A DNA stretch of 64,000 nt from the NCBI RefSeq assembly GCF_040938485.1, contig NW_027271834.1, positions 248,001-312,000 of the forward strand. Direction: 5' to 3'. This DNA comes from Diadema antillarum. Taxonomy: Eukaryota. The notes beneath the pieces are model-generated. The model saw only the letters and a list, made by a program, of their open reading frames with translations, had not been told where the DNA came from and searched no databases. Positions 15,138-64,000 of this stretch are shown here, piece by piece; the first letter of the stretch is position 1, and the number at the start of each line of letters is the position of its first letter. The position numbers and the translations under genes are program-made.

Positions 15138-27920
<12,783 letters not shown>

Positions 27921-53000: not shown

Positions 53001-56000
53001 ATACATTCAAATCATTACCCCCCCCCCCAAAAAAAAAAAAAAAGACATCCTCTCGAGCAATATTGCAGTGTTTAACCCATCGAGGATGGGCTGATTTTGC
53101 TACAACACGCATTTCCCATAGACACTTGCCCGAGTATGGAGCTCGTCCTCAACGGTTTAATCTCCGCTAATACATGTACATACTGGCAATGCTTACCTCG
53201 ATTGCTTCACGTCTGGCATCAATCAGTTCTTGCTGGTACTTCCGAACGGAGAGTTTCTCTGCTTTCTGGGCCATTTTCAGTTGCCATGACGTTTTCAGAG
53301 GCTTGTCCTTGCGCAAATCGGAAAATCTGAAGAGATAACGATATTAGATGTGTTGAAGTTGAACATGGACCCATATATCCACAATCCTCCAGTTTACCAT
53401 AGAGGTGATTTGTGCATTTAATTGTTGTGATAATGTGCTGTACACGGTACAACATGTACATGTGGCTGAGACTAGTGAAACACAAGTATTCCACAAACAG
53501 CTTGTCCATATTGTCTCTTTTTTTCATCACGATTATATGAATGCAATGTAGAGAATACATGTATGCAGGGTACACAATATTATTTAGTACGCAAGGAGAG
53601 AGTGTGTGTGTGTGTGTGTGTATACATGTACACGAACATTGCACATATACAATGTACATAAAGCTGTTTTCTTTGCCTGTCAATCTTTGTGCGCGTTAAC
53701 GCATTTGGGAAGTTACTGTAAGTTAACTTACAAAAACACACCCTTTTGATATTTTACACTACATGTAGCACAGCAAGTTTCATGTACCGGTAATCTGTAT
53801 TACAGTCCTAATGCATCCGTGATATACAGTGTACATTGTATGTAGACTCCATAGCTTGCTGAATGTGGTAGTAACCAGTGCACACAGCCAGATACAGTGT
53901 ACACGTACCACAATTTTTCAATTTTTTCAATTTTTTCAATTTTTTTTCCCCCAGGAACATATGCCTTACATATTCTACATAGCCAGTTCAGGTCACAACG
54001 AAAATTTGAACATCCTGTTTACTGTGGATGACCCACTGCATTAAACTCCAGAACACACAACCATATTTCTATCTCGATGGTCTCACCTTGCCGTCTGCTC
54101 CGTTTTCCATTTTCTTCCAGACTTTGGCCTCCCCTTCATCTGTCTTTTCATGATTGACTCCTTCTTGTATGCCTCTTTGGCATTTCTCGCTATCTCCTCA
54201 TGCAATCTCCTGACCTCTGATGGGTCCATCTCTTTCTCCTCTGCCACATTATTACTCTCCTCGTCACCATGACAACTACCACGTTTCTGTCGAGAGGAAT
54301 CCGGAGGTGTTTTGGTGCTTTGCACTGATTCGCTGGTTGCAATTTTCTCAGTCAATTTTCCCACATGTTTTTCATGCTTTGATGATAAAGCAGGGCTTGA
54401 AGAATCAGATGCTACCTTTCCTTTGTGAACCACTGATCCACCTGTAGTTTTGCACGTGCCCTGTGCAGCATCTGTATTGATTCCTACTTGGTCAAGTGAC
54501 TTTGAGGTGGACTTGGGATGACTTGATTCTAGAAAGAGACAATGAAAAGGCGACAATGAATTCTGACAAGATAGCATATACACAGTTGTATGTGTATCTA
54601 ATGACTTCTTTATAATGTACAGAAACTGGAGCATCTACAGAGACTCCAACCCAAAACACCTTCTGATCTGGAGATTCTTCCGCCTGAAACCCCTAGCAAA
54701 CGGGAGATTCCAACTTGATGTGTGCGAAGCGCGAAGTTCCTAGGGTTCTAGATGCTCTCTTGTGCTATCTAAGGCTTATTTTTTCAACACACGATAGAAA
54801 TAAGTAAGAAATCCTTTCCAACGGGAGACAAAGAGCCAGGGCAGGAGAAATTAAATCTCAAACGGGAGAACGGGAGATTTTGCAAAAATGGGTTTTCGCC
54901 GGGAGATCTCCCGTCGAAAACGGGAGAGTTGGAGTCTCTGCATCTACTCTGTGGACAGTTATACATACAATTGTACATGGATTGCAATTGATGACTTCGA
55001 GAAGAAACACATTGAGAGACAGGCAGTCTTTCTATATCCTTTTTATACGCAGTGAAGCATCATCTTTTAATTCAAATTCTAACAAGAGTACAATCATCTG
55101 AATCCATAAACCTCTTGTACTTCAAACAGATGAGGTGTTTGTGCAATCTAATGTTCATTTATAATTATATATAAATGTATTCTTTTTTAACAGCACTCAC
55201 TGTGAATACAGATTCCAGAGACTGTTAAAACTAGAGCCTGTCAAAAAGCAGTTCACAGAAAAACCTTTTCAACGCATTGTGCCTTAATACATAGTTACAC
55301 TTGAATCAACCATATATATATCTTCATACTTGACATAATCGTATAGTACAATGACCTCCTGTATAACAAACATTGACCTTACAATGTTATTCTTGCGTCA
55401 ACAAAGCAAAAATTCAGTTTCAAAAATCACTATTCTATGATATACAATATACACTGTATATCTCTTTACATACTAAAATGTTTTCTGAAAAAAGAAAGAA
55501 AGAATGAATAAGTGCATAACAGTATACCAAATGAAAAATGCTGGTCCCAAGAACCTTGTTACAGTAGGAGTTGCCTGCATTGCAAATTTGTCTAAAACTC
55601 TCAAGTAAAGTACATGTATTTACAGTGACATTGTCACTGAATACCATCAAAGTCAGTCTGCAACATGTTATTCCATGTTAAAGGCATTAAAGTTGATTTT
55701 CTTATAGTGGAACTACTGGGGCAGGTTTATAAGAAAAATCTGTGAATTGCAGGTTTAACAAATCAGAAGGCAGACAGAAAGACAAACACACTGTTTGTAA
55801 ACAACAACAAAGAACTAAACAGCAAAAAAGTTGTATTATAATCCATGATTTGTGACCCTGCATTACAAAACCGACAAAAAGTCGCCAGACATCGATTTTT
55901 ACACAGTTCCTCCAAAGGACAGATACTGAGAGAGCAGACTCTAAGCTCTAAAATGATATTTATCAAATTACCATTAAAAGTTCATAAAAATTAAAATTGG

Positions 56001-58135
56001 ACTTCCCTAACCCATCTACAAAATGGACAGAATGCAATTGCACATACTCTGGAAAAGTGCTGCTGAGAAAAGAGGCTTTGAACTTTAGATTAGGGTCTAC
56101 AGTACAAGTATATTCAAGCACTTAATCTCACAAAGCTGCACTCTGTCCTTTGAATGGGACAAAAAACAGGATGTACATCTTGTAATACTCAGTAGCAACC
56201 ACAATGAAGGGATTATCGGATTAAGCTGTGAAAATCTTGGACACTCAAGAAGCACATTCTATTCATACTAACTTTCAAGGCAGTGGCTTCATCTTTTCAA
56301 AAGTTATTAGAGATGAAAGTGAAGATGTTCAGGGTTTTGTTTTGTTTTGTTTTTTAATTGATACGGAGCACCAAAGACTTACCTAATCACACAATTACAC
56401 AATTCTACAAAAAAGAAAAAACTCTGCTCTAAAAAAATTGCAAAAAACACAATTGTCCATTTGTTAATCATTATGATCTCAAACTTTCGAATAATGCAGA
56501 AGAATTGCACGGTCATGAAATATAAAAAGCTTAAGATTGACTAGGTTGACCCTTCACATCTTCAGTGGCTTCATTAAGTCCTCACATAAAATTGGCTTAT
56601 AAATGCGACTTTGGTTTTGAGATGCACAGTAACATGTTTATTTTATAATTAATAAATCCTGTTTTATAATTCTTTAATTAATAACAAATGCACAATTATT
56701 AATGAAAGTCATGTTTTGAGCCAAAATTTGACAATAATTTACAAACTCTAACCCTTTCTCCAACAACTCTGCACTATAGTCTCTGCATCATAGTTTAGTC
56801 TACAACTCTGTATATCTTGTAAAGGATACAGTGTATGTACAATTGTACATATGATACACAGGATATTTACATAAATGGGCCATCACAACAATACTCATCT
56901 ATCGATTCTATGATCTATAGTCCACCTTCATAGACACGTGGATTGAGTAAATGCAACAATATTAGTATAACACATCAGTGAAAATTTGGGGAAAATTGGA
57001 CAATCCGTTCAAAAGTTAAGAATTTTTAAAGTATCTGTGCAGTCACTGCTGGATGAGAAGACTACTGCAGTGTATTATGTCACATGCGTACAACGATATA
57101 AGGAAAATAAAAAGAGAATTTCACAAAACTTCACTTTTTTAATAAAGTGCACATTTCTTCAACTTTAATACTGACGTATGTTATTGTTAAGGGTAATATT
57201 ATTTCCCCTGCCTTCTGAAAGACAGCAGTCAAGTATTCTTTTGTTATGCGAGTAAAGTGAAAATATGTTGATTTTTCTTTTTTATTTCTTTACAGCATGT
57301 ATATTGTTGTACACATGTGACATCACAACAAGCTATAGTAGTCTTCTCATCCAGCCGTGACTGAGCTGAAACTTCAAGAATTCATAACTTTTGAACGGAT
57401 TGTCCAATTTTCCTCAAACTCTCACTGATGTATGTAGAACATAATAATTGCGGCATTCATTCAACCCACACAGATATGAAGGTGGACTTGTCCTTTAACT
57501 GGTTGTGGCAAAAAAACAAAAACAAACAAACAAACAAACAAAAAACTTTTAGCATGTTTAGTGAAATCGAACAATGTGATGTGTTCTTAAATACTGTAGA
57601 ATAAATAAAAGAAAAAAAAGGGGGGGGGGGAGAGAATAGGGTAAACGCACATGATACCGAAATTGCATTTAGTAATAATAGTCTAGATCTAGACCAGTTC
57701 TTTGTTTCTTGCAACTATTTATGCTTCTTAAGAGTTAAGTTCTTGTGTCTGGTACCACTCTATTGCCTATTAAAATCTGTGTTGTTTTGGCACATATCAC
57801 CTATTTGAAACGCTCAACTGGCACGCCAAGGTGCAGGCTGCAGTGAGCTGAGAAACACCAGCAATAGGCAGCATCTACATGATATTTCACAGCGACACTG
57901 TACTTTCATACATCACAGTCCACCTAAAGAAATAAAACGTTGTTAGTGGGTCCAATCACAGCTCCCACTTGAACGGGCACGTCCCCACAGCCACTGCACA
58001 GGGCATATCTGTACAACTTTTTCAAGAAAACAAAAATATCAGTTGTAATAAATTAGTTCCCTTACCACTTCCTTCAGCCACTGAATTTGACTCCGCAGCT
58101 TTGAGTCTGGAGCTTCGTCTTGTGCCAACAACCAT
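50098..58135 (-). CDS. CCDC86: Coiled-coil domain-containing protein 86 (Cgr1 family, nucleolar / ribosome biogenesis), 260 aa
   Basis: Minus-strand exons 58135-58066 (MVVGTRRSSRLK...), 54528-54087, 53326-53197, 51666-51592, 50163-50098 (783 nt); phases are compatible. The C-terminus KGRPKSGRKWK...[15 protein letters not shown]...[35 protein letters not shown] matches the recalled CCDC86/Cgr1 signature. Exon 1 is the least certain part. Confidence 0.9.
50636..51401. mobile_element. piggyBac-like non-autonomous element in the last CCDC86 intron
   Basis: TTAA|CCCTATTCTAACTGGG ... CCCAGTTAGAATAGGG|TTAA (perfect 16-bp TIR); subterminal GGGGGGTCAAATTGACCCCCC palindromes at both ends. Confidence 0.9.
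53076..53156. mobile_element. 81-bp mini piggyBac-like element
   Basis: TTAA|CCCATCGAGGATGGG ... CTCGTCCTCAACGGT|TTAA; TIR 10/15 match. Confidence 0.55.
54638..54940. mobile_element. hAT-like MITE with AACGGGAGA subterminal repeats
   Basis: TIR CAGAGACTCCAAC / GTTGGAGTCTCTG flanked by duplicated CATCTA (or GCATCTAC if the terminal base is counted in the TSD); several (A)CGGGAGA motifs. Confidence 0.75.
56915..57494. mobile_element. Kolobok-like long-TIR element in CCDC86 intron 1
   Basis: Right end GAAGGTGGACTTGTCCT|TTAA; left AGTCCACCTTCAT (outer bases lost); ~120-bp inverted arms including GGAAAATTGGACAATCCGTTCAAAAGTTA. Confidence 0.7.
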
Positions 58136-58477
58136 GATGATTTTGAGCAAAACTCCAAGAGCAATGACCTACCTAACTGGTGGGTAAGTGCAAGTGTTTA
58201 GTGTTAGACACCAATTGCAATACAAAATGTATGTACAGGGATACAGTGTACTGTATGTATGTCACGGCACACGCACGTGCTGTCTATCAGCCACATTAGA
58301 CATCACACTGTACAGTACTCAATCTAGCCTGCTTTCCAGGCAAGTGTAGCATGTATCCCCAATTGTCAGTGATTATTTATAACGACAAAAAGACACAAGT
58401 CAACGTCGATTCCAATGAACATCTACATATTTTTGGAGCTTATTATCATTATTTCTATTTCATTTGATATTACTCAC

Positions 58478-58773
58478 CTATTTCATATCAATTTTTTCGA
58501 GGGACGAGGAAAGAAGTGTCGAACTATCAAAGTAGCCTGCCGAACTGTACCACGATTTGTTTTGTTGACGATAAGTCTGGCACCCATAGCTTGACCCTTG
58601 ATACCCTCCATACGTAATCACGTTGCTCAACACATGTCACCCGGTATTCGGTCGTAATCCAGAATCAACGGTGTCGCGGTGTTTTTCCTGGACGAGCGCA
58701 GTGGCAGTGAACGTCACCGAACGACCACACAAATGCAGCGCGGCGGTACTACCGGTGCGTGATTTGCCGGGTG
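58478..58773. promoter_or_regulatory. Candidate bidirectional promoter and first non-coding exons (CCDC86 on minus; divergent plus-strand transcript)
   Basis: Minus-strand donor TAG|GTGAGT at 58478/58477 pairs with acceptor CCCACCAG at 58177, just upstream of the CCDC86 ATG. A plus-strand donor GTG|GTGAGT lies at 58773/58774. The stretch between them is CpG-rich. Confidence 0.4.
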
Positions 58774-59800
58774 GTGAGTCAGACCTTTGCCTTGCGCCTT
58801 TGTGAAAGAAAAGAACGATGAATCTGCGGTCTTTCTCACATGTCTTTATATGCAAGTCCGGTCTTTGCGTATATGTACGATGATCAGTGCTTGAAAACTG
58901 ACATTTTCTTGGCGTCAAGGAAGGAATCGATTTGATTTTGATAAGTTTTGATAACAACGTGCTGGTGAGTTCTTTGTCGTTGATAATGTAGTGGCTGGCC
59001 TTCTCGCCACTTTGTGTTTTGGTCAGTGACAGTGTTACCGATGTGATCTTGAGTTCTAACTGATTCTAGTGTTAGTGTTACGAGTGTGTGAGACTGATCC
59101 AGAAGAGCAGAGGTGTGATGATTAACTTTAGTGTGATATTTTACCACAACGTACAAACATAGTTACACCTTTTTTTGGACTTGGATACTTGTTGCTGTCT
59201 TTTCATACATTATAGGCTTATAGGTAATAGTTCGCTACCGTTGTGAATTGTGCATGTTCTGGACACGATGAATGAATTATTATTATAATAATAATTTAGG
59301 TTGTTAACCAGTGTTAATTAATTGCTATGAATTACGATGTCAAGTGAGGGGGAGTCCTCTAATCCTTTATTATTAGGGTCATACCAATCGTTGTGAATCA
59401 AACTATCCTATAAAATTTGCTTCAAAGGCAAAGCAGTGAACACATGGTCATTTTCAATTTTACAGTTGCCTACAGTCATCAGGCAGTTGGCCAGTGATTC
59501 GATCATCCAAGAACAATTATATTGGGCCTATGTTATGATGCATGCAGAGTGCCGAGATCTCTTAACTGTCAAGCTGAGCCTTGCCCCCTTTACAATAAAC
59601 TGTACAAACTTCTTGTACATAATTTGTAGGTCCATACATTGTATGTAGACCCTACCTTTTTGCAAACCCAATTCATTCATACTAACCATGCTAACCCTAC
59701 ATGATGTAGATTTTATGTTATACATTTTATATTAAATTTGTTCCCTTAAACAATATCATAATTCATAGATACAGTAATATACATGTAACATTAACTACAC

Positions 59801-59831
59801 GCAGCCGCTGTCGTGAAGCGACAGCGGCTGC
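59801..59831. other. Perfect GC-rich 13-bp hairpin
   Basis: GCAGCCGCTGTCG-TGAAG-CGACAGCGGCTGC. Confidence 0.9.
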
Positions 59832-60865
59832 ACGTCTACTCCTTCGCAGACGTTGTCATTTTTCAGTGGTGGTTGTGCGACTCCTTCATGAATATATTTT
59901 TTAATCGTGGAAAACTAAAATATAAGGAATCCCCGTAATCTATGATAATCATCCAATAATCGGTATGCGTATTTTTTTTTTAATTACGTCAAAAACCTAC
60001 CGAAATCCGTCCTTAAAATCAGGTCTGTGAGCGTCCGTATTGCTTCACTCCTCATCTTCTGCGTGTTATTGAATGGCAATCACTCTCCTATGCTACAACG
60101 TAGGTAGTCGGAGGTAGTCGGAGTGACGTCATATCATGAGAGCAGCACGCGCGGAAATACATGGTAGAAGACGACAAGCTTTACGTAACACACGAAACGC
60201 ACGGGCGTACGTAAAATGCAAACACGGTACCTCGGGTTGAGCGTTCGTGGCTGTTCGTTTAGTTTGTGAATCATCGTACAATCTACTCCGAAAAATTCAA
60301 CAATAAGGTTTGGATACCAACAAAACACCAAATTCAACTCAACCATCAGCAACATACGATATAGGTGGGTGGTATTACTGTTCAAATCAAACAAAATAAA
60401 AGACATTTTTGTGGTCTTGCCGTCAAAAGCGACAGTCGTTTACGTACGTTTAAACACTAGTACATGTCAGACTGCTGTGCTGTGCACAGCGGTCTGGTCA
60501 GGCTAATGTAACATATACATTCAAATGGAAATGATACAGTTGATGCAAAACACAAGTATTTATGAACAGGGAAGTAACACATGGGCTAGGGCTCACAAAA
60601 GTAATTAAGGTGTTTTAATTTTGCCCTTAGGCATGTAAGCCCTCATGTGATGCATTCCTGTACTCAGACACAATGTATAAAAAGCACATTAATCAAAAAG
60701 ACCATTAGCCTAATAATTTCCCCTTTTGTTGTTTATGTTTCGTTGCTGTTGACTACCTCTGAAAGACAGGCAGAAATTTTACAGTTTATCTTTCTCTTGT
60801 TGAAACAGTTCGCAATACATAAGTCGCCAAGCATCCACTAGACACCGATCTCCATAGATACAACA

Positions 60866-62902
60866 ATGGCTGATGTCCGACGAGTCCCCATTCAGCTCCG
60901 TCTGATGACCTACCTGTCGCCCGGTCTTCCGGTCGAGTTCTTCGAGATGATTGCTCATTACCTGGAAGAGAAGATGGGATGTCCCGTCTACCTAATCTAT
61001 GAAAGTCGCTGGTCGGGTCCTCCCAGCGATAGGACAGACCCCTTCACTCTAGATCACATTGATTTGGGTGAGTATGCAGCACTTGAAGGTGATAGAAATA
61101 TGTCCCTTAAAAAGTCAAAGCTTTTTCATTACAACTGATTGACAAATTCATCGACATAAAGAAAATACTGATTGCTTCAATACATTAAGTAGTAGCTGCA
61201 TTAAAACTTGATTTGTCAATCAGTTGTGATAGCAAACAACTTGACATACCCGGTAAACTCAATTTGAATTCACAGGCCATCAGTCGGGTGAAAACTTGGA
61301 AGTCTAGTGGATGTGATGCTTGTCTAGCAACTAGGAGGTCATGGGTTTGAATCTAACCCAAATATGTATGGCCCATGATTTTTGTCATGGCGACTACTCA
61401 ATACACCAAACAGTGTTTCTTTACATCAGCGAAAGGCATTATTGTCCGTATTGCGTAAGTTGCACTGAAAAACGACTCGACACAAGAATTACGAGTTTGA
61501 CAGGCAAAACTTGAAGTCCTCGTAAGAAATAAAGAAAAACACAAAATACAAAGCATGATTAAGTTGGATAGGGAGCACATACATGTAGGCCTCAATATTG
61601 TATCGACCTGTCTCACTGAGTACTCGAGAAAGAAGTGGTGGAGGTAACTTTGTGTCATTAGGAGATCAAGAGGAAAATGAGGCAAATTGGTTTGAAGGCC
61701 TTAGTGGCAGTAGCCATACTCCAGGGAGGGAGAGAGAAAGATGGGAAAACAGAAAGATTGGGAGAAAGAAAGAGGAATAGATAGACAGAGACAGACCAAA
61801 AAAAAAAAAAAAAAAAACAGGCAGGGAAAATAGTAAGATTACATGTATCAACAATTGCGAAGAGTTCGTATGAGAAAAGCTACCAAGCAGTAGAGGGAAA
61901 GCTTTTGATATACGGTGGACTCCCGTTGTAACGAAGTCCTCGGGGACCGGCGGTTTTCTTTCGTTATATCGAAATTTTGTTATAACCGAACAAATAAACA
62001 ATGAAATACTCGGAGCAGATAATGTTGCAGCCTCAATTTTTACTTCGTTGCAACCTGGATTTTGTTATAACTGTGTTCATTATAATGGGAATTCACTGTA
62101 TATGTGAATGGGGGTCTCTCTTCTGTGATAGTCTTGATAATGGTTTTTTTTCTTTCTGTTGCATCCCAAAAAGCATTCATGAATGCAGAGCCCTTTATGA
62201 AGCTGGTCAGTAGAGCCAAGGACAAGGCCGAGCTGCTTCCCGTGGCGCCGGTCTACCCTCACCCCAAATCGGACAACAAGCCAGTCTACTTCTCTGATGT
62301 CATCGTCCATGCAGACAACTGGTACAGCCCTTCTCACAGATCTTCCCCCTCCCCCCGCCCACCCCCCTTGTTGGCATGCTACCTGGATGTGTTCCATATG
62401 GGGCCAATCCCATGTGTTATTTGTTGATTACCAAGACACAATAATATAACTTCATTTTGGAGACAATAGTCACAAACCGAATGGCATGTAGAAAAGAAGA
62501 AGAGTTGACTCTACATCCTAACATGAAGACAATGTAGAGATATATGTGCACTTATGTGTTTATTCTGGTATTCAAAAATGATTTGATGTGCAAGCTCTGC
62601 TTCATAGATCATTTTGTCTTTCTCTTTGATAACCTGTAGATATGTTGTGATTACGTTTCTAGTTCCTTATCCATGATGACACTGATTGATATTATAGAAC
62701 ATTTCCATAACTTGGTTGCAGATATTATGTTATTGTTATCTTTCTGTTTTCTGTAGTGAAAAGTACAAAGAATTCAAGGACCTGCGAGGCGTGAAATGGG
62801 CTTACAGCGGGCCAGATTCTCCCAGCGGCGTCTACACGACTCTCAGGCAGCTGAAGAAGATGGGCGAAACTGTGATGTTCTTCGGGCACATCATTCAGTC
62901 AG
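60866..62902 (+). CDS. PhnD-like phosphonate/phosphate-binding (periplasmic binding fold, Phosphonate-bd family) protein; 5' part, 3' exons not found in the window
   Basis: Exons 60866-61067, 62174-62321, 62757-62902, in frame across GT-AG introns: MADVRRVPIQLRLMTYLSPGLPVEFFEMIAHYLEEKMG...HIDLAFMNAEPFMKL...PVYFSDVIVHADNCEKYKEFKDLRGVKWAYSGPDSPSG...FFGHIIQSG. The pattern Y-x-S-x-(V/I)-(I)-V...DL-x-G-x-x-x-A...S-x-S-G is typical of PhnD-family binding proteins (recalled). Confidence 0.75.
61301..61360 (+). mobile_element. Decayed tRNA-derived SINE head
   Basis: AGTCTAGTGG (A-box-like) ... GAGGTCATGGGTTTGAATC (B-box-like). Confidence 0.4.
61913..62098. mobile_element. Tc1/mariner-type MITE (same family as 9909-10103)
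   Basis: TA|CGGTGGACTCCCGTTGTAACGAAG ... CATTATAATGGGAATTCACTG|TA. Confidence 0.75.
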
Positions 62903-64000
62903 GTGAGTGGTGTTTCAGGCTAACTTACCCTGACCTGATGTAAGACTTACCCTGCATGAGGTACCGGGTGGTCCTAAGAAAGATCTCATGTCAGTTTTTA
63001 ACCTCTGACCATTCACATTTGTGTCTCTCTCACCCTAGGCTTTGGGGAAGAGTTCCCATCAGCAAGTCCAGGGGTCAACTTATATTCAAATAATCTGTCT
63101 TGTGCGCTCACATGAATGGGAAAGAAGCTCCTTGCTTGGTATTGCATACACGTCGTCAGCATGTGATCGGGATGCCTTGAGGCATCACAATGTCTAACTT
63201 TGATCCAAAGCCCAACAGGTATGCCCAGGGACAGAGGAGTTAGCCCCCTCCCCCCCCCCCCCCCCCCATCACTGGAACTTTCCTAGACATGGAGACAACT
63301 GCACAAGCATTGTTGAAGTTATCATTTCTGTGATGAAATGTGTGTGGCATCTGGATCAGAGTGCTATATAAATATCGTCGCTGGGGTGACAAGATCTTCT
63401 ATCTACAATTTTGGTGAAAATGACTTTTTTTAACTAATAGTCAAATAATGGGTTAAGTGATGTCCTGTCCAAATCCCAACTGTCTTACTCCAAAAATGAA
63501 GCCACCACGGCATGTCAAAGGAAAGGCTATCCCATTCGCTATAGTGCTTTGGCCGCCATGTTTTTTGGCTGTCCTGAACATTTGACATTTTGTAGATACG
63601 AGGGATATCATTTGTGGCAGCACTCTTGCTGCAATTACCATTACAGCCACCAGTCATAACTAAATAACAATCAGTGAGCCACCTATGGCATCCTATGTAT
63701 TGTGTACGGGGGTTCAAGCATTACTGGGTTGTGAGTGCAGGAAAATTTGAATGTGTCTTTGTCGTGATAGTATCGTTTCATTGTTGTCCTCTCTTTGAAG
63801 TTGTCTCCATTATTAATTGCAAAATCAGCTGTTTTCTGCAGTTAGTAGATATTGATATTGTAAAAATCATCTTGGCGGTATTTATGAATGTTAGTTCTGA
63901 CTTTAATGTAGAAAAAAAAAATTGTCCTTCTGTATTCCACAGTAACCACTTTTAAATGAAATAATCGACTATTGGGGTTATGATTTTGATTGTTGACTTA

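Follow-up and report, generated by a model that had tools for sequence, protein, structure and literature searches.

Textbooks describe solute-binding proteins of the Phosphonate-bd family as components of bacterial importers and sensors that work outside the cytoplasm. Why, then, does a sea urchin carry an intron-containing gene for such a protein, and what could the product do with neither an export signal nor a transporter at its side? This question is raised by a 64,000-nt stretch of the Diadema antillarum contig NW_027271834.1 (248,001 to 312,000, forward strand; hereafter the window, whose own positions are used below), in which an initial annotation, made from the sequence alone, had recognized three in-frame spliced exons with PhnD-like motifs. 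As set out here, we regard the locus, with a probability of roughly 0.6, as a functional gene for a stand-alone intracellular Venus-flytrap binder of a small anionic ligand, bacterial in origin and ancient in bilaterians; the gene itself, its family, its fold and its history are near-certain.

To describe the gene, the in-window exons were searched individually, and whole-protein analyses were carried out on a deposited 286-residue "uncharacterized protein [Diadema antillarum]" (P0168), which is identical to all three exons. The three exons lay at exactly the annotated coordinates, and their translations together with the split junction codons (A68 and C117) were 100% identical to P0168; each splice junction was verified by translating its 30-nt flanks. 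The window sequence matched contig JBFRCO010000946.1 of GCA_040938485.1 at 3135 of 3135 bases, and when P0168 was mapped on that contig, the Diadema gene was found to consist of five exons with canonical splice sites, as follows.

60839..60841, + strand: in-frame TAG stop, 8 codons 5′ of the start codon, seen in the translation of 60626-61066.
60866..61067, + strand: exon 1, starting at the ATG (60866) and followed by the donor GTGAGT (61068, phase 1), encoding residues 1-67 and the first base of codon 68; it contains strand beta1, helix 1 and the ESRWSGPP...DPF insert common to the nearest bacterial relatives.
61068..62173, + strand: intron 1, 1106 nt, GT..AG, phase 1, acceptor AG at 62172-73.
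62174..62321, + strand: exon 2, 148 nt, residues 68-116, donor GT at 62322 (phase 2); it contains N71 and Y106, the latter in PVYFSDVIV.
62322..62756, + strand: intron 2, 435 nt, GT..AG, phase 2, acceptor AG at 62755-56.
62757..62902, + strand: exon 3, 146 nt, residues 117-165, donor GTGAGT at 62903 (phase 1); it contains DLRGVKWAY and the anion-binding loop S138-P139-S140-G141.
62903..64000, + strand: the first 1098 nt of intron 3, beginning with the donor GTGAGT; the intron ends at window-equivalent 64116.
Window-equivalent 64117-64296 and 65006-65190, + strand: exons 4 and 5, beyond the window, placed by mapping P0168 on the matching contig.

The motif YFSDVIV is located in exon 2, and DLRGVKWAY and SPSG are located in exon 3. 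A GSH-like histidine motif had been expected to come next, and it was found as S165-G166-S167-H168 across the junction of exon 3 with exon 4, the latter lying outside the window. No further exon was found in any forward frame of 62903-64000.

The family assignment was then examined at the levels of sequence, profile and fold. In an exhaustive search of 1.84 billion proteins, exon 1 alone retrieved 184 relatives at E ≤ 0.001, and its best match, at 2.5e-32, puts the gene signal far above chance; full-length relatives (280-295 residues) aligned to exon 1 from their own residue 4-20 onward. P0168 scored 107.6 bits on the Pfam model Phosphonate-bd (PF12974; E = 8.6e-31, gathering cut-off 27), which bore out the family proposed by the annotation, and nine full-length animal, metagenomic and bacterial-looking relatives scored 72-114 bits on the same model. 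Single exons fell under the cut-off, and exon 3 alone matched weakly (19.1 bits, E = 9e-4; TIGR01098, E = 4e-4). On narrower models, P0168 reached 89.8 bits on the PhnD equivalog TIGR03431, under its cut-off of 261.1; 102.6 bits on TIGR01098, the phosphate/phosphite/phosphonate ATP-binding cassette (ABC) binding-protein subfamily, narrowly under its cut-off of 112.05; and 26 bits on TIGR04553 (ABC_peri_selen). An AlphaFold2 model of P0168, built with 44 relatives, had a predicted local distance difference test score (pLDDT) of 93.5 and a predicted template modeling score (pTM) of 0.89, and displayed the two-lobed type-II periplasmic-binding-protein fold. Foldseek placed AioX and ArrX at the top (E ~1e-22, template modeling score [TM] 0.75-0.83), followed by PtxB, PhnD, HtxB and BstB, and the top 43 matches were all members of the Phosphonate-bd family. 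Sequence comparison with solved relatives gave E values of 4.7e-13 for ArrX, 3.5e-8 for AioX, 5e-6 for PtxB and 7e-3 for E. coli PhnD. Because ArrX, AioX and PtxB are nearer than PhnD by both sequence and fold, the name "PhnD" used in the annotation is valid at the level of the Pfam family only. By the same alignments and model, the nearest characterized proteins are the arsenic-oxyanion binders ArrX and AioX, with the phosphite binder PtxB next.

Each of these relatives resembles the Diadema protein in some respects and departs from it in others. The periplasmic arsenate/arsenite binders ArrX, AioX and ArxX, which belong to XSR sensor modules (PDB 6x6b, 6esk; PMC5908839), are the best solved matches in sequence and fold; the clade of P0168 keeps the full AioX pocket pattern, and here too a binding protein is uncoupled from transport. 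However, identity is ~22%, P0168 has no signal peptide, no sensor kinase or regulator adjoins the gene in animals, and AioX Tyr88, Cys106 and Asp210 are replaced by Trp, Asn and Asn in Diadema. PtxB and HtxB, the phosphite and hypophosphite subunits of ABC importers (PDB 5o2j, 5lq1, 5me4), share the Pfam family, the fold (TM ~0.75-0.84) and the Ser-x-Ser plus His anion site with P0168, but they are secreted, are encoded with PtxA/PtxC and show a weaker sequence similarity than ArrX (E = 5e-6).

What the protein might bind was addressed by mapping the ligand pocket. The AioX pocket is formed by Tyr88, Cys106, Tyr131, Ser161, Ser163, His192 and Asp210; five of these residues are common with PhnD, Cys106 and Asp210 set the AioX group apart, and the amine-binding Glu177 and Asp205 of PhnD correspond to AioX Tyr212 and Pro240 (PMC5908839). 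By alignment, the seven AioX positions correspond to W49, N71, Y106, S138, S140, H168 and N186 of P0168. In the pocket of E. coli PhnD for 2-aminoethylphosphonate (2-AEP), Tyr93, Ser127, Ser129 and His157 are kept in P0168 as Y106, S138, S140 and H168, whereas Tyr47 is changed to Trp, Thr128 to Pro and, again by alignment, Glu177 and Asp205 to T188 and P214. Among the 44 relatives, the pattern aromatic-Cys-Tyr-Ser-x-Ser-His-Asp is found at these positions in every one of the 16 bacterial proteins and in most of the animal proteins. Diadema reads W-N-Y-S-S-H-N and retains four of the seven residues of the AioX pattern; in both Diadema and S. purpuratus, Asn replaces the pocket Cys as well as the pocket Asp (P0168 positions 71 and 186), a transcript of another urchin (L090) carries Ser at the former and Asn at the latter, and Holothuria and arthropods have Ser in place of the pocket Cys. 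The annotation had singled out S-P-S in place of S-T-S as a change that may alter the ligand. This change is minor, since the middle residue is variable (mostly Leu in animals, with Pro confined to urchins, and Gln, His or Leu in bacteria), and the notable urchin changes are those of Cys71 and Asp186. Taken together, the alignments suggest that the anion-binding half of the pocket is intact, that the 2-AEP amine site is absent and that urchins carry a lineage-specific double change. Because Cys and Asp are both replaced by Asn in the pocket, the ligand specificity of sea urchins probably differs from that of other animals.

These pocket data bear directly on the proposal that the protein is a PhnD-derived cytosolic carrier or sensor for phosphonates, 2-AEP in particular, or for some other phosphorus metabolite. 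Phosphonolipids are present in many marine invertebrates, and the protein is of the same Pfam family and fold as E. coli PhnD, the 2-AEP/alkylphosphonate subunit of PhnCDE (PDB 3p7i; TIGR03431), all four of whose phosph(on)ate-oxygen residues, Tyr, Ser, Ser and His, are kept. In Rubrobacteraceae the gene closes a phnDCE-like operon, and AioX itself has been crystallized with phosphate bound (PMC5908839). On the other hand, the PhnD equivalog cut-off was missed widely (89.8 versus 261.1 bits), the similarity to E. coli PhnD is weak (E = 7e-3), P0168 is without a signal peptide and without PhnC or PhnE, and the closest relatives bind arsenic oxyanions or phosphite. The amine-binding Glu177 and Asp205, moreover, are Thr188 and Pro214. 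The family also takes very diverse ligands, such as thiosulfate or tetrathionate in sensor domains and sterols in BstB. The latter, a periplasmic sterol-binding protein of Methylococcus (PDB 7t1m; PMC10942540), belongs to the same Pfam family and illustrates that the fold accommodates non-phosphorus ligands, but it is 12% identical to P0168 and its cavity is hydrophobic, without the polar anion pocket conserved in the P0168 clade. The 2-AEP idea is weakened, and we consider a phosphonate or phosphorus-metabolite carrier rather unlikely.

The absence of a signal peptide and of transporter partners, both claimed by the annotation, was confirmed. In the P0168 model, strand beta1 begins at residue 11, and within the first 40 residues the maximum 10-residue hydropathy is 1.3, versus 2.9 for a true lipoprotein PhnD (the Rubrobacteraceae operon protein described below, whose leader ends in LVGC). 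By the position of beta1, the hydropathy and the TAG upstream of the ATG, P0168 has no signal peptide or lipoprotein leader. Similarly, 16 animal orthologues have 4-18 residues ahead of strand beta1, and their top 10-residue hydropathy in the first 40 residues is 0.7-2.0. In another sea urchin, an intronless Logan contig of 1298 nt (L090, run SRR6173504) encodes a protein 81% identical to P0168 and carries a 114-nt leader with in-frame stops just 5′ of the same Met, plus a 3′ untranslated region; thus, a spliced mRNA without an upstream coding exon exists in that urchin. Full-length open reading frames (ORFs) were also found on 1-3 kb Logan contigs of urchin, sea cucumber, mussel and oyster, with 145 members in the oyster cluster, a sign that the gene is expressed in these relatives. 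No PhnC/PhnE-type gene was found near the gene at the Diadema, Asterias, Glandiceps, Lingula and Liolophura loci; at the Darwinula locus no neighboring genes were called. On its 556-kb contig, the Diadema gene is flanked by a Cgr1/CCDC86-like gene upstream (− strand) and by Med21 downstream. The former is represented in the window by a 183-residue ORF (54083-54634, − strand) with a basic Cgr1/CCDC86-like C-terminal domain, which makes it the divergent upstream neighbor, and on the matching contig the corresponding gene was assigned Pfam Cgr1. An identical 286-residue protein with the same Cgr1 neighbor and other intron lengths is encoded on JBFRCO010000035.1 of GCA_040938485.1 (L002, 891542-915829), and this copy is a haplotig or a very recent duplicate. 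At the Asterias locus, an unrelated eukaryotic ABCB-type transporter gene lies 4 kb downstream, probably by coincidence.

The distribution of the gene among animals was next considered. The remark in the annotation that similar uncharacterized proteins exist in other invertebrates proved correct: named relatives occur in echinoderms (Strongylocentrotus, Asterias, Acanthaster, Patiria, Amphiura and Holothuria), hemichordates (Glandiceps and Saccoglossus), a brachiopod (Lingula), molluscs (a chiton, limpets, abalone, periwinkle, mussels, oysters and clams), annelids (Capitella, Owenia and Dimorphilus) and arthropods (the ostracods Darwinula and Cyprideis, Artemia, Timema and Plodia), where they are either labeled "uncharacterized" or given the automatic name "PhnD2" or "PtxB". 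Among the named matches, about one-quarter of the database proteins being named, chordates, cnidarians, sponges and non-animal eukaryotes were not seen. In a maximum-likelihood tree of 81 rows, the 31 animal rows (20 named and 11 unnamed) formed one clade with a Shimodaira-Hasegawa-like approximate likelihood ratio test (SH-aLRT) value of 100, and the order within it broadly matched animal phylogeny, with hemichordates, then echinoderms, then arthropods, then Lingula, molluscs and an annelid. The bacterial phyla formed a polytomy, and no sister group of the animal clade was singled out. The four introns of Diadema (phases 1, 2, 1 and 1) recur in Asterias and Glandiceps, with identical inner exon lengths of 148, 146 and 180 nt; the position and phase of introns 1 and 2 are common to these three species, the chiton Liolophura and the ostracod Darwinula, intron 3 is common with Lingula, and intron 4 is common with Lingula and the chiton. 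The ratio of nonsynonymous to synonymous substitution rates (dN/dS) between Diadema and the urchin transcript was 0.11 for exon 2 and 0.05 for exon 3, dS being saturated in exon 1. Since the animal sequences form one clade with common intron positions and phases, the origin of the gene lies in early bilaterians. These data indicate that it was acquired once from bacteria, ahead of the divergence of protostomes and deuterostomes, and then gained introns, descended vertically under purifying selection and was lost several times, in agreement with the "anciently acquired, intronised" origin suggested in the annotation.

The same evidence argues strongly against an artefact. A bacterial-like sequence in an animal assembly could reflect bacterial contamination, a pseudogene or a mis-modeled gene. 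Against this stand the four spliceosomal introns at positions common across phyla, the animal genes on both sides in a 556-kb contig, the strong purifying selection and the spliced transcripts in related species, and the artefact explanation is effectively refuted. Gene models of the animal proteins are already public. No paper on animal members was found in the literature searched, in line with the remark that their function appears unstudied; phosphonate is unmentioned in the main text of a compendium of metazoan horizontal gene transfers, and no earlier account was found of a clade without signal peptides that includes both bacteria and Bilateria. A few further observations concern the animal genes. 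In Asterias amurensis (L005) and Glandiceps talaboti (L007), an SH2B-type adaptor gene (Phe_ZIP/PH/SH2) lies immediately upstream on the opposite strand, a microsynteny that is kept in sea star and acorn worm and lost in Diadema. In Cyprideis torosa CAG0905013.1 (P0117), the N-terminal half of the protein is fused to a Tpt1/KptA RNA 2′-phosphotransferase domain, likely a chimeric gene model. In the ENA proteins P0020 (646 residues) and P0082 (1700 residues), exon 1 was matched in 7 and 5 separate stretches, respectively, which suggests tandem copies or run-together models.

To place the animal clade among its bacterial relatives, prokaryotes were scanned with one genome per species. This yielded 247 loci, of which the best 80 were analyzed; these included Rubrobacteria and other Actinomycetota (36), Acidobacteriota (21), Planctomycetota (12), Rokubacteria/Methylomirabilota (6) and Chloroflexota (2). 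At 31 of the 80 loci, no more than 20 codons, and in several only 2-7, separate the nearest upstream in-frame stop from the first strand, leaving no space for a leader ahead of beta1; at the remaining loci, the upstream ORF extension is Arg/Pro-rich noise, as in high-GC DNA. The bacterial proteins nearest to the animal clade also carry the "SGP...DPF" insert of exon 1. Since the nearest bacterial relatives are themselves signal-less, the intracellular state would predate the bacteria-to-animal transfer, and the "repurposing" of a secreted protein as a cytosolic one, which the annotation had invoked, is not needed.

Gene neighborhoods were examined by clustering every ORF located up to 5 kb from one of the 80 loci. 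A universal bacterial partner was rejected, as the recurrent neighbors were mostly lineage-specific housekeeping genes (ArgRS, RlmH, Rho and DapA). An ABC transporter partner across three phyla was rejected as well, because the cluster reflected generic ABC ATPase homology and only an operon of Rubrobacteraceae was real. In this operon, found at eight Rubrobacteraceae loci, a LysR regulator, a secreted PhnD, an ABC ATPase, a PhnE-type permease and, last, the signal-less gene follow one another on the same strand, 20-90 bp apart. A lipoprotein leader precedes the secreted PhnD, which scores 212 bits on TIGR01098 and 173 bits on the "putative selenate" model TIGR04553. An adjacent response regulator was seen only at the locus of the distant P0191.

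A second kind of neighbor raised the possibility of a role in thio-/seleno-histidine or selenium metabolism, in which the ligand would be a selenium or sulfur oxyanion or a molecule of the hercynine, ergothioneine, selenoneine or ovothiol type, animals having inherited a bacterial intracellular partner of sulfoxide/selenoxide synthases of the EgtB/SenA/OvoA class. An EgtB/SenA-type synthase gene was found within ~2 kb downstream at 11 of the 68 bacterial loci with sufficient flank, namely five Rubrobacteraceae, five Planctomycetota and L087, which fall into at least four separate clades of the tree. In the five Planctomycetota and L087, the synthase gene is directly next on the same strand, with true EgtB scores in two of these loci (L066 and L085; 575 and 536 bits, cut-off 360). 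At the Rubrobacteraceae locus L010, SenA (519.7 bits, cut-off 420), SenB (417, cut-off 300) and SelD (323, cut-off 125) are neighbors. Here, in the metagenome-assembled genome contig CAWJAM010000005.1 (8927-12412), the complete SenA/SenB/SelD selenoneine cluster adjoins the phnDCE-like importer and its LysR regulator. Supportively, a putative selenate transporter gene is reported near many sen clusters (10.1101/2022.04.13.486033), PhnE and ABC_peri_selen are reported to be co-encoded with 3.1% of such synthases (PMC13674229), and ovothiol is made via OvoA in sea urchins and other marine invertebrates (PMC4768315, PMC8623360).

The adjacency nevertheless concerns a minority of loci, and unrelated genes surround P0290 and P0300, which among the bacterial proteins resemble the animal ones most. 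A complete sen cluster at the Planctomycetota genes was rejected: EgtB alone adjoins, with no SelD, SenB or EgtD within ~5 kb. OvoA is reported in sponges and cnidarians, where a P0168-type protein was unseen among the named matches, so the two distributions are no simple match, and there is no synteny with OvoA in animals. The pocket chemistry lends no direct support to a histidine-betaine ligand. As for ABC_peri_selen itself, it is of the same Pfam family, and a 173-bit relative occurs in the Rubrobacteraceae operon by SenA/SenB/SelD, but it has a lipoprotein leader, P0168 reaches only 26 bits on the model, and P0168 is 20% identical to the secreted PhnD of that operon. We therefore take the EgtB/Sen adjacency as a lead toward candidate ligands and hold a selenium or thio-histidine function to be unlikely.

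The reading we prefer, a soluble intracellular binder of a small anion, can be put together as follows. A clade without signal peptides spans Rubrobacteria, Planctomycetota, Acidobacteriota, Rokubacteria, Chloroflexota and bilaterian invertebrates; the animal genes derive from one ancient acquisition that gained four introns and was inherited vertically under purifying selection. The two lobes are predicted to close on a small anionic ligand, which would be held by the conserved half of the pocket, Y106, S138, S140 and H168, the set common to PhnD, PtxB, AioX and ArrX. Given that no membrane partner is present, the protein would serve as a soluble cytosolic binder (a sensor, buffer or hand-off protein) and not as a transporter subunit.

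Several points weigh against this reading. The pocket was mapped by pairwise HMMER alignment read with a published structure-based alignment (PMC5908839), not from model coordinates; expression in Diadema itself is deduced from its relatives; and the signal-less N terminus may still be compatible with unconventional secretion or organelle import. A binder also leaves the conserved C terminus of the animal proteins unexplained: nearly all animal orthologues end in Tyr-Tyr (VYY, TYY or AYY; residues 285-286 of P0168, in exon 5), the bacterial relatives lack it, and this tail is of low confidence in the model. Finally, binding-protein folds have been turned into enzymes repeatedly, and the distant fold matches of P0168 include Thi5 (Foldseek rank 50), so that an enzymatic role has some, if low, probability.

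In such a case, the protein would resemble Thi5, MqnA/MqnD or cyclohexadienyl dehydratase, with Cys, His and Asp as catalytic residues. This would suit an intracellular, stand-alone protein, as well as the invariant Cys-His-Asp in 16 of 16 bacterial relatives examined and the biosynthetic enzyme genes that adjoin in some bacteria. However, the same Cys, His and Asp bind the ligand in the non-catalytic AioX. Since a number of animal lineages, namely sea urchins, a sea cucumber and arthropods, show that Cys and Asp can be dispensed with, a shift of specificity fits better than a loss of catalysis, and we regard an enzyme as doubtful.

With a ligand-binding function still preferred, the locus now represents a well-defined orphan and not yet a new mechanism: a small soluble protein with a confident fold and a defined pocket. 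A clade without an export signal has been defined in both bacteria and animals. Purifying selection has maintained its animal branch, and the intron positions have stayed fixed, since a time before protostomes and deuterostomes diverged. As no chordate occurs among the named matches, the gene would have been lost from the most-studied laboratory lineages. Natural pocket variants are available in sea urchins (Asn/Asn) versus sea stars and molluscs (Cys/Asp). The bacterial neighborhoods (a phnDCE-like importer, EgtB and SenA/SenB/SelD) suggest candidate ligands, from oxyanions of the phosphite, arsenite and selenite type to thio- and seleno-histidines; some of these compounds are abundant yet poorly understood in marine invertebrates. 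If a selenium or sulfur oxyanion or a thio- or seleno-histidine (ovothiol, ergothioneine or selenoneine) should prove to be bound, the protein would be a previously unrecognized component of animal redox-metabolite or selenium metabolism.

Minor features of the window were also recorded. Rfam and tRNA scans of 58000-64000 gave no match. In intron 1 there is a 20-nt poly-A run at 61800-61819, and at ~61335-61360 a tRNA T-arm-like stretch, at which ARAGORN called no tRNA and which may be the remnant of a short interspersed nuclear element; in intron 3 a poly-C run of ~24 nt occupies 63246-63269. An ORF at 23245-23637 (+ strand) carries a motif typical of prostaglandin reductase/zinc-type alcohol dehydrogenases and is probably one exon of paralogous genes.

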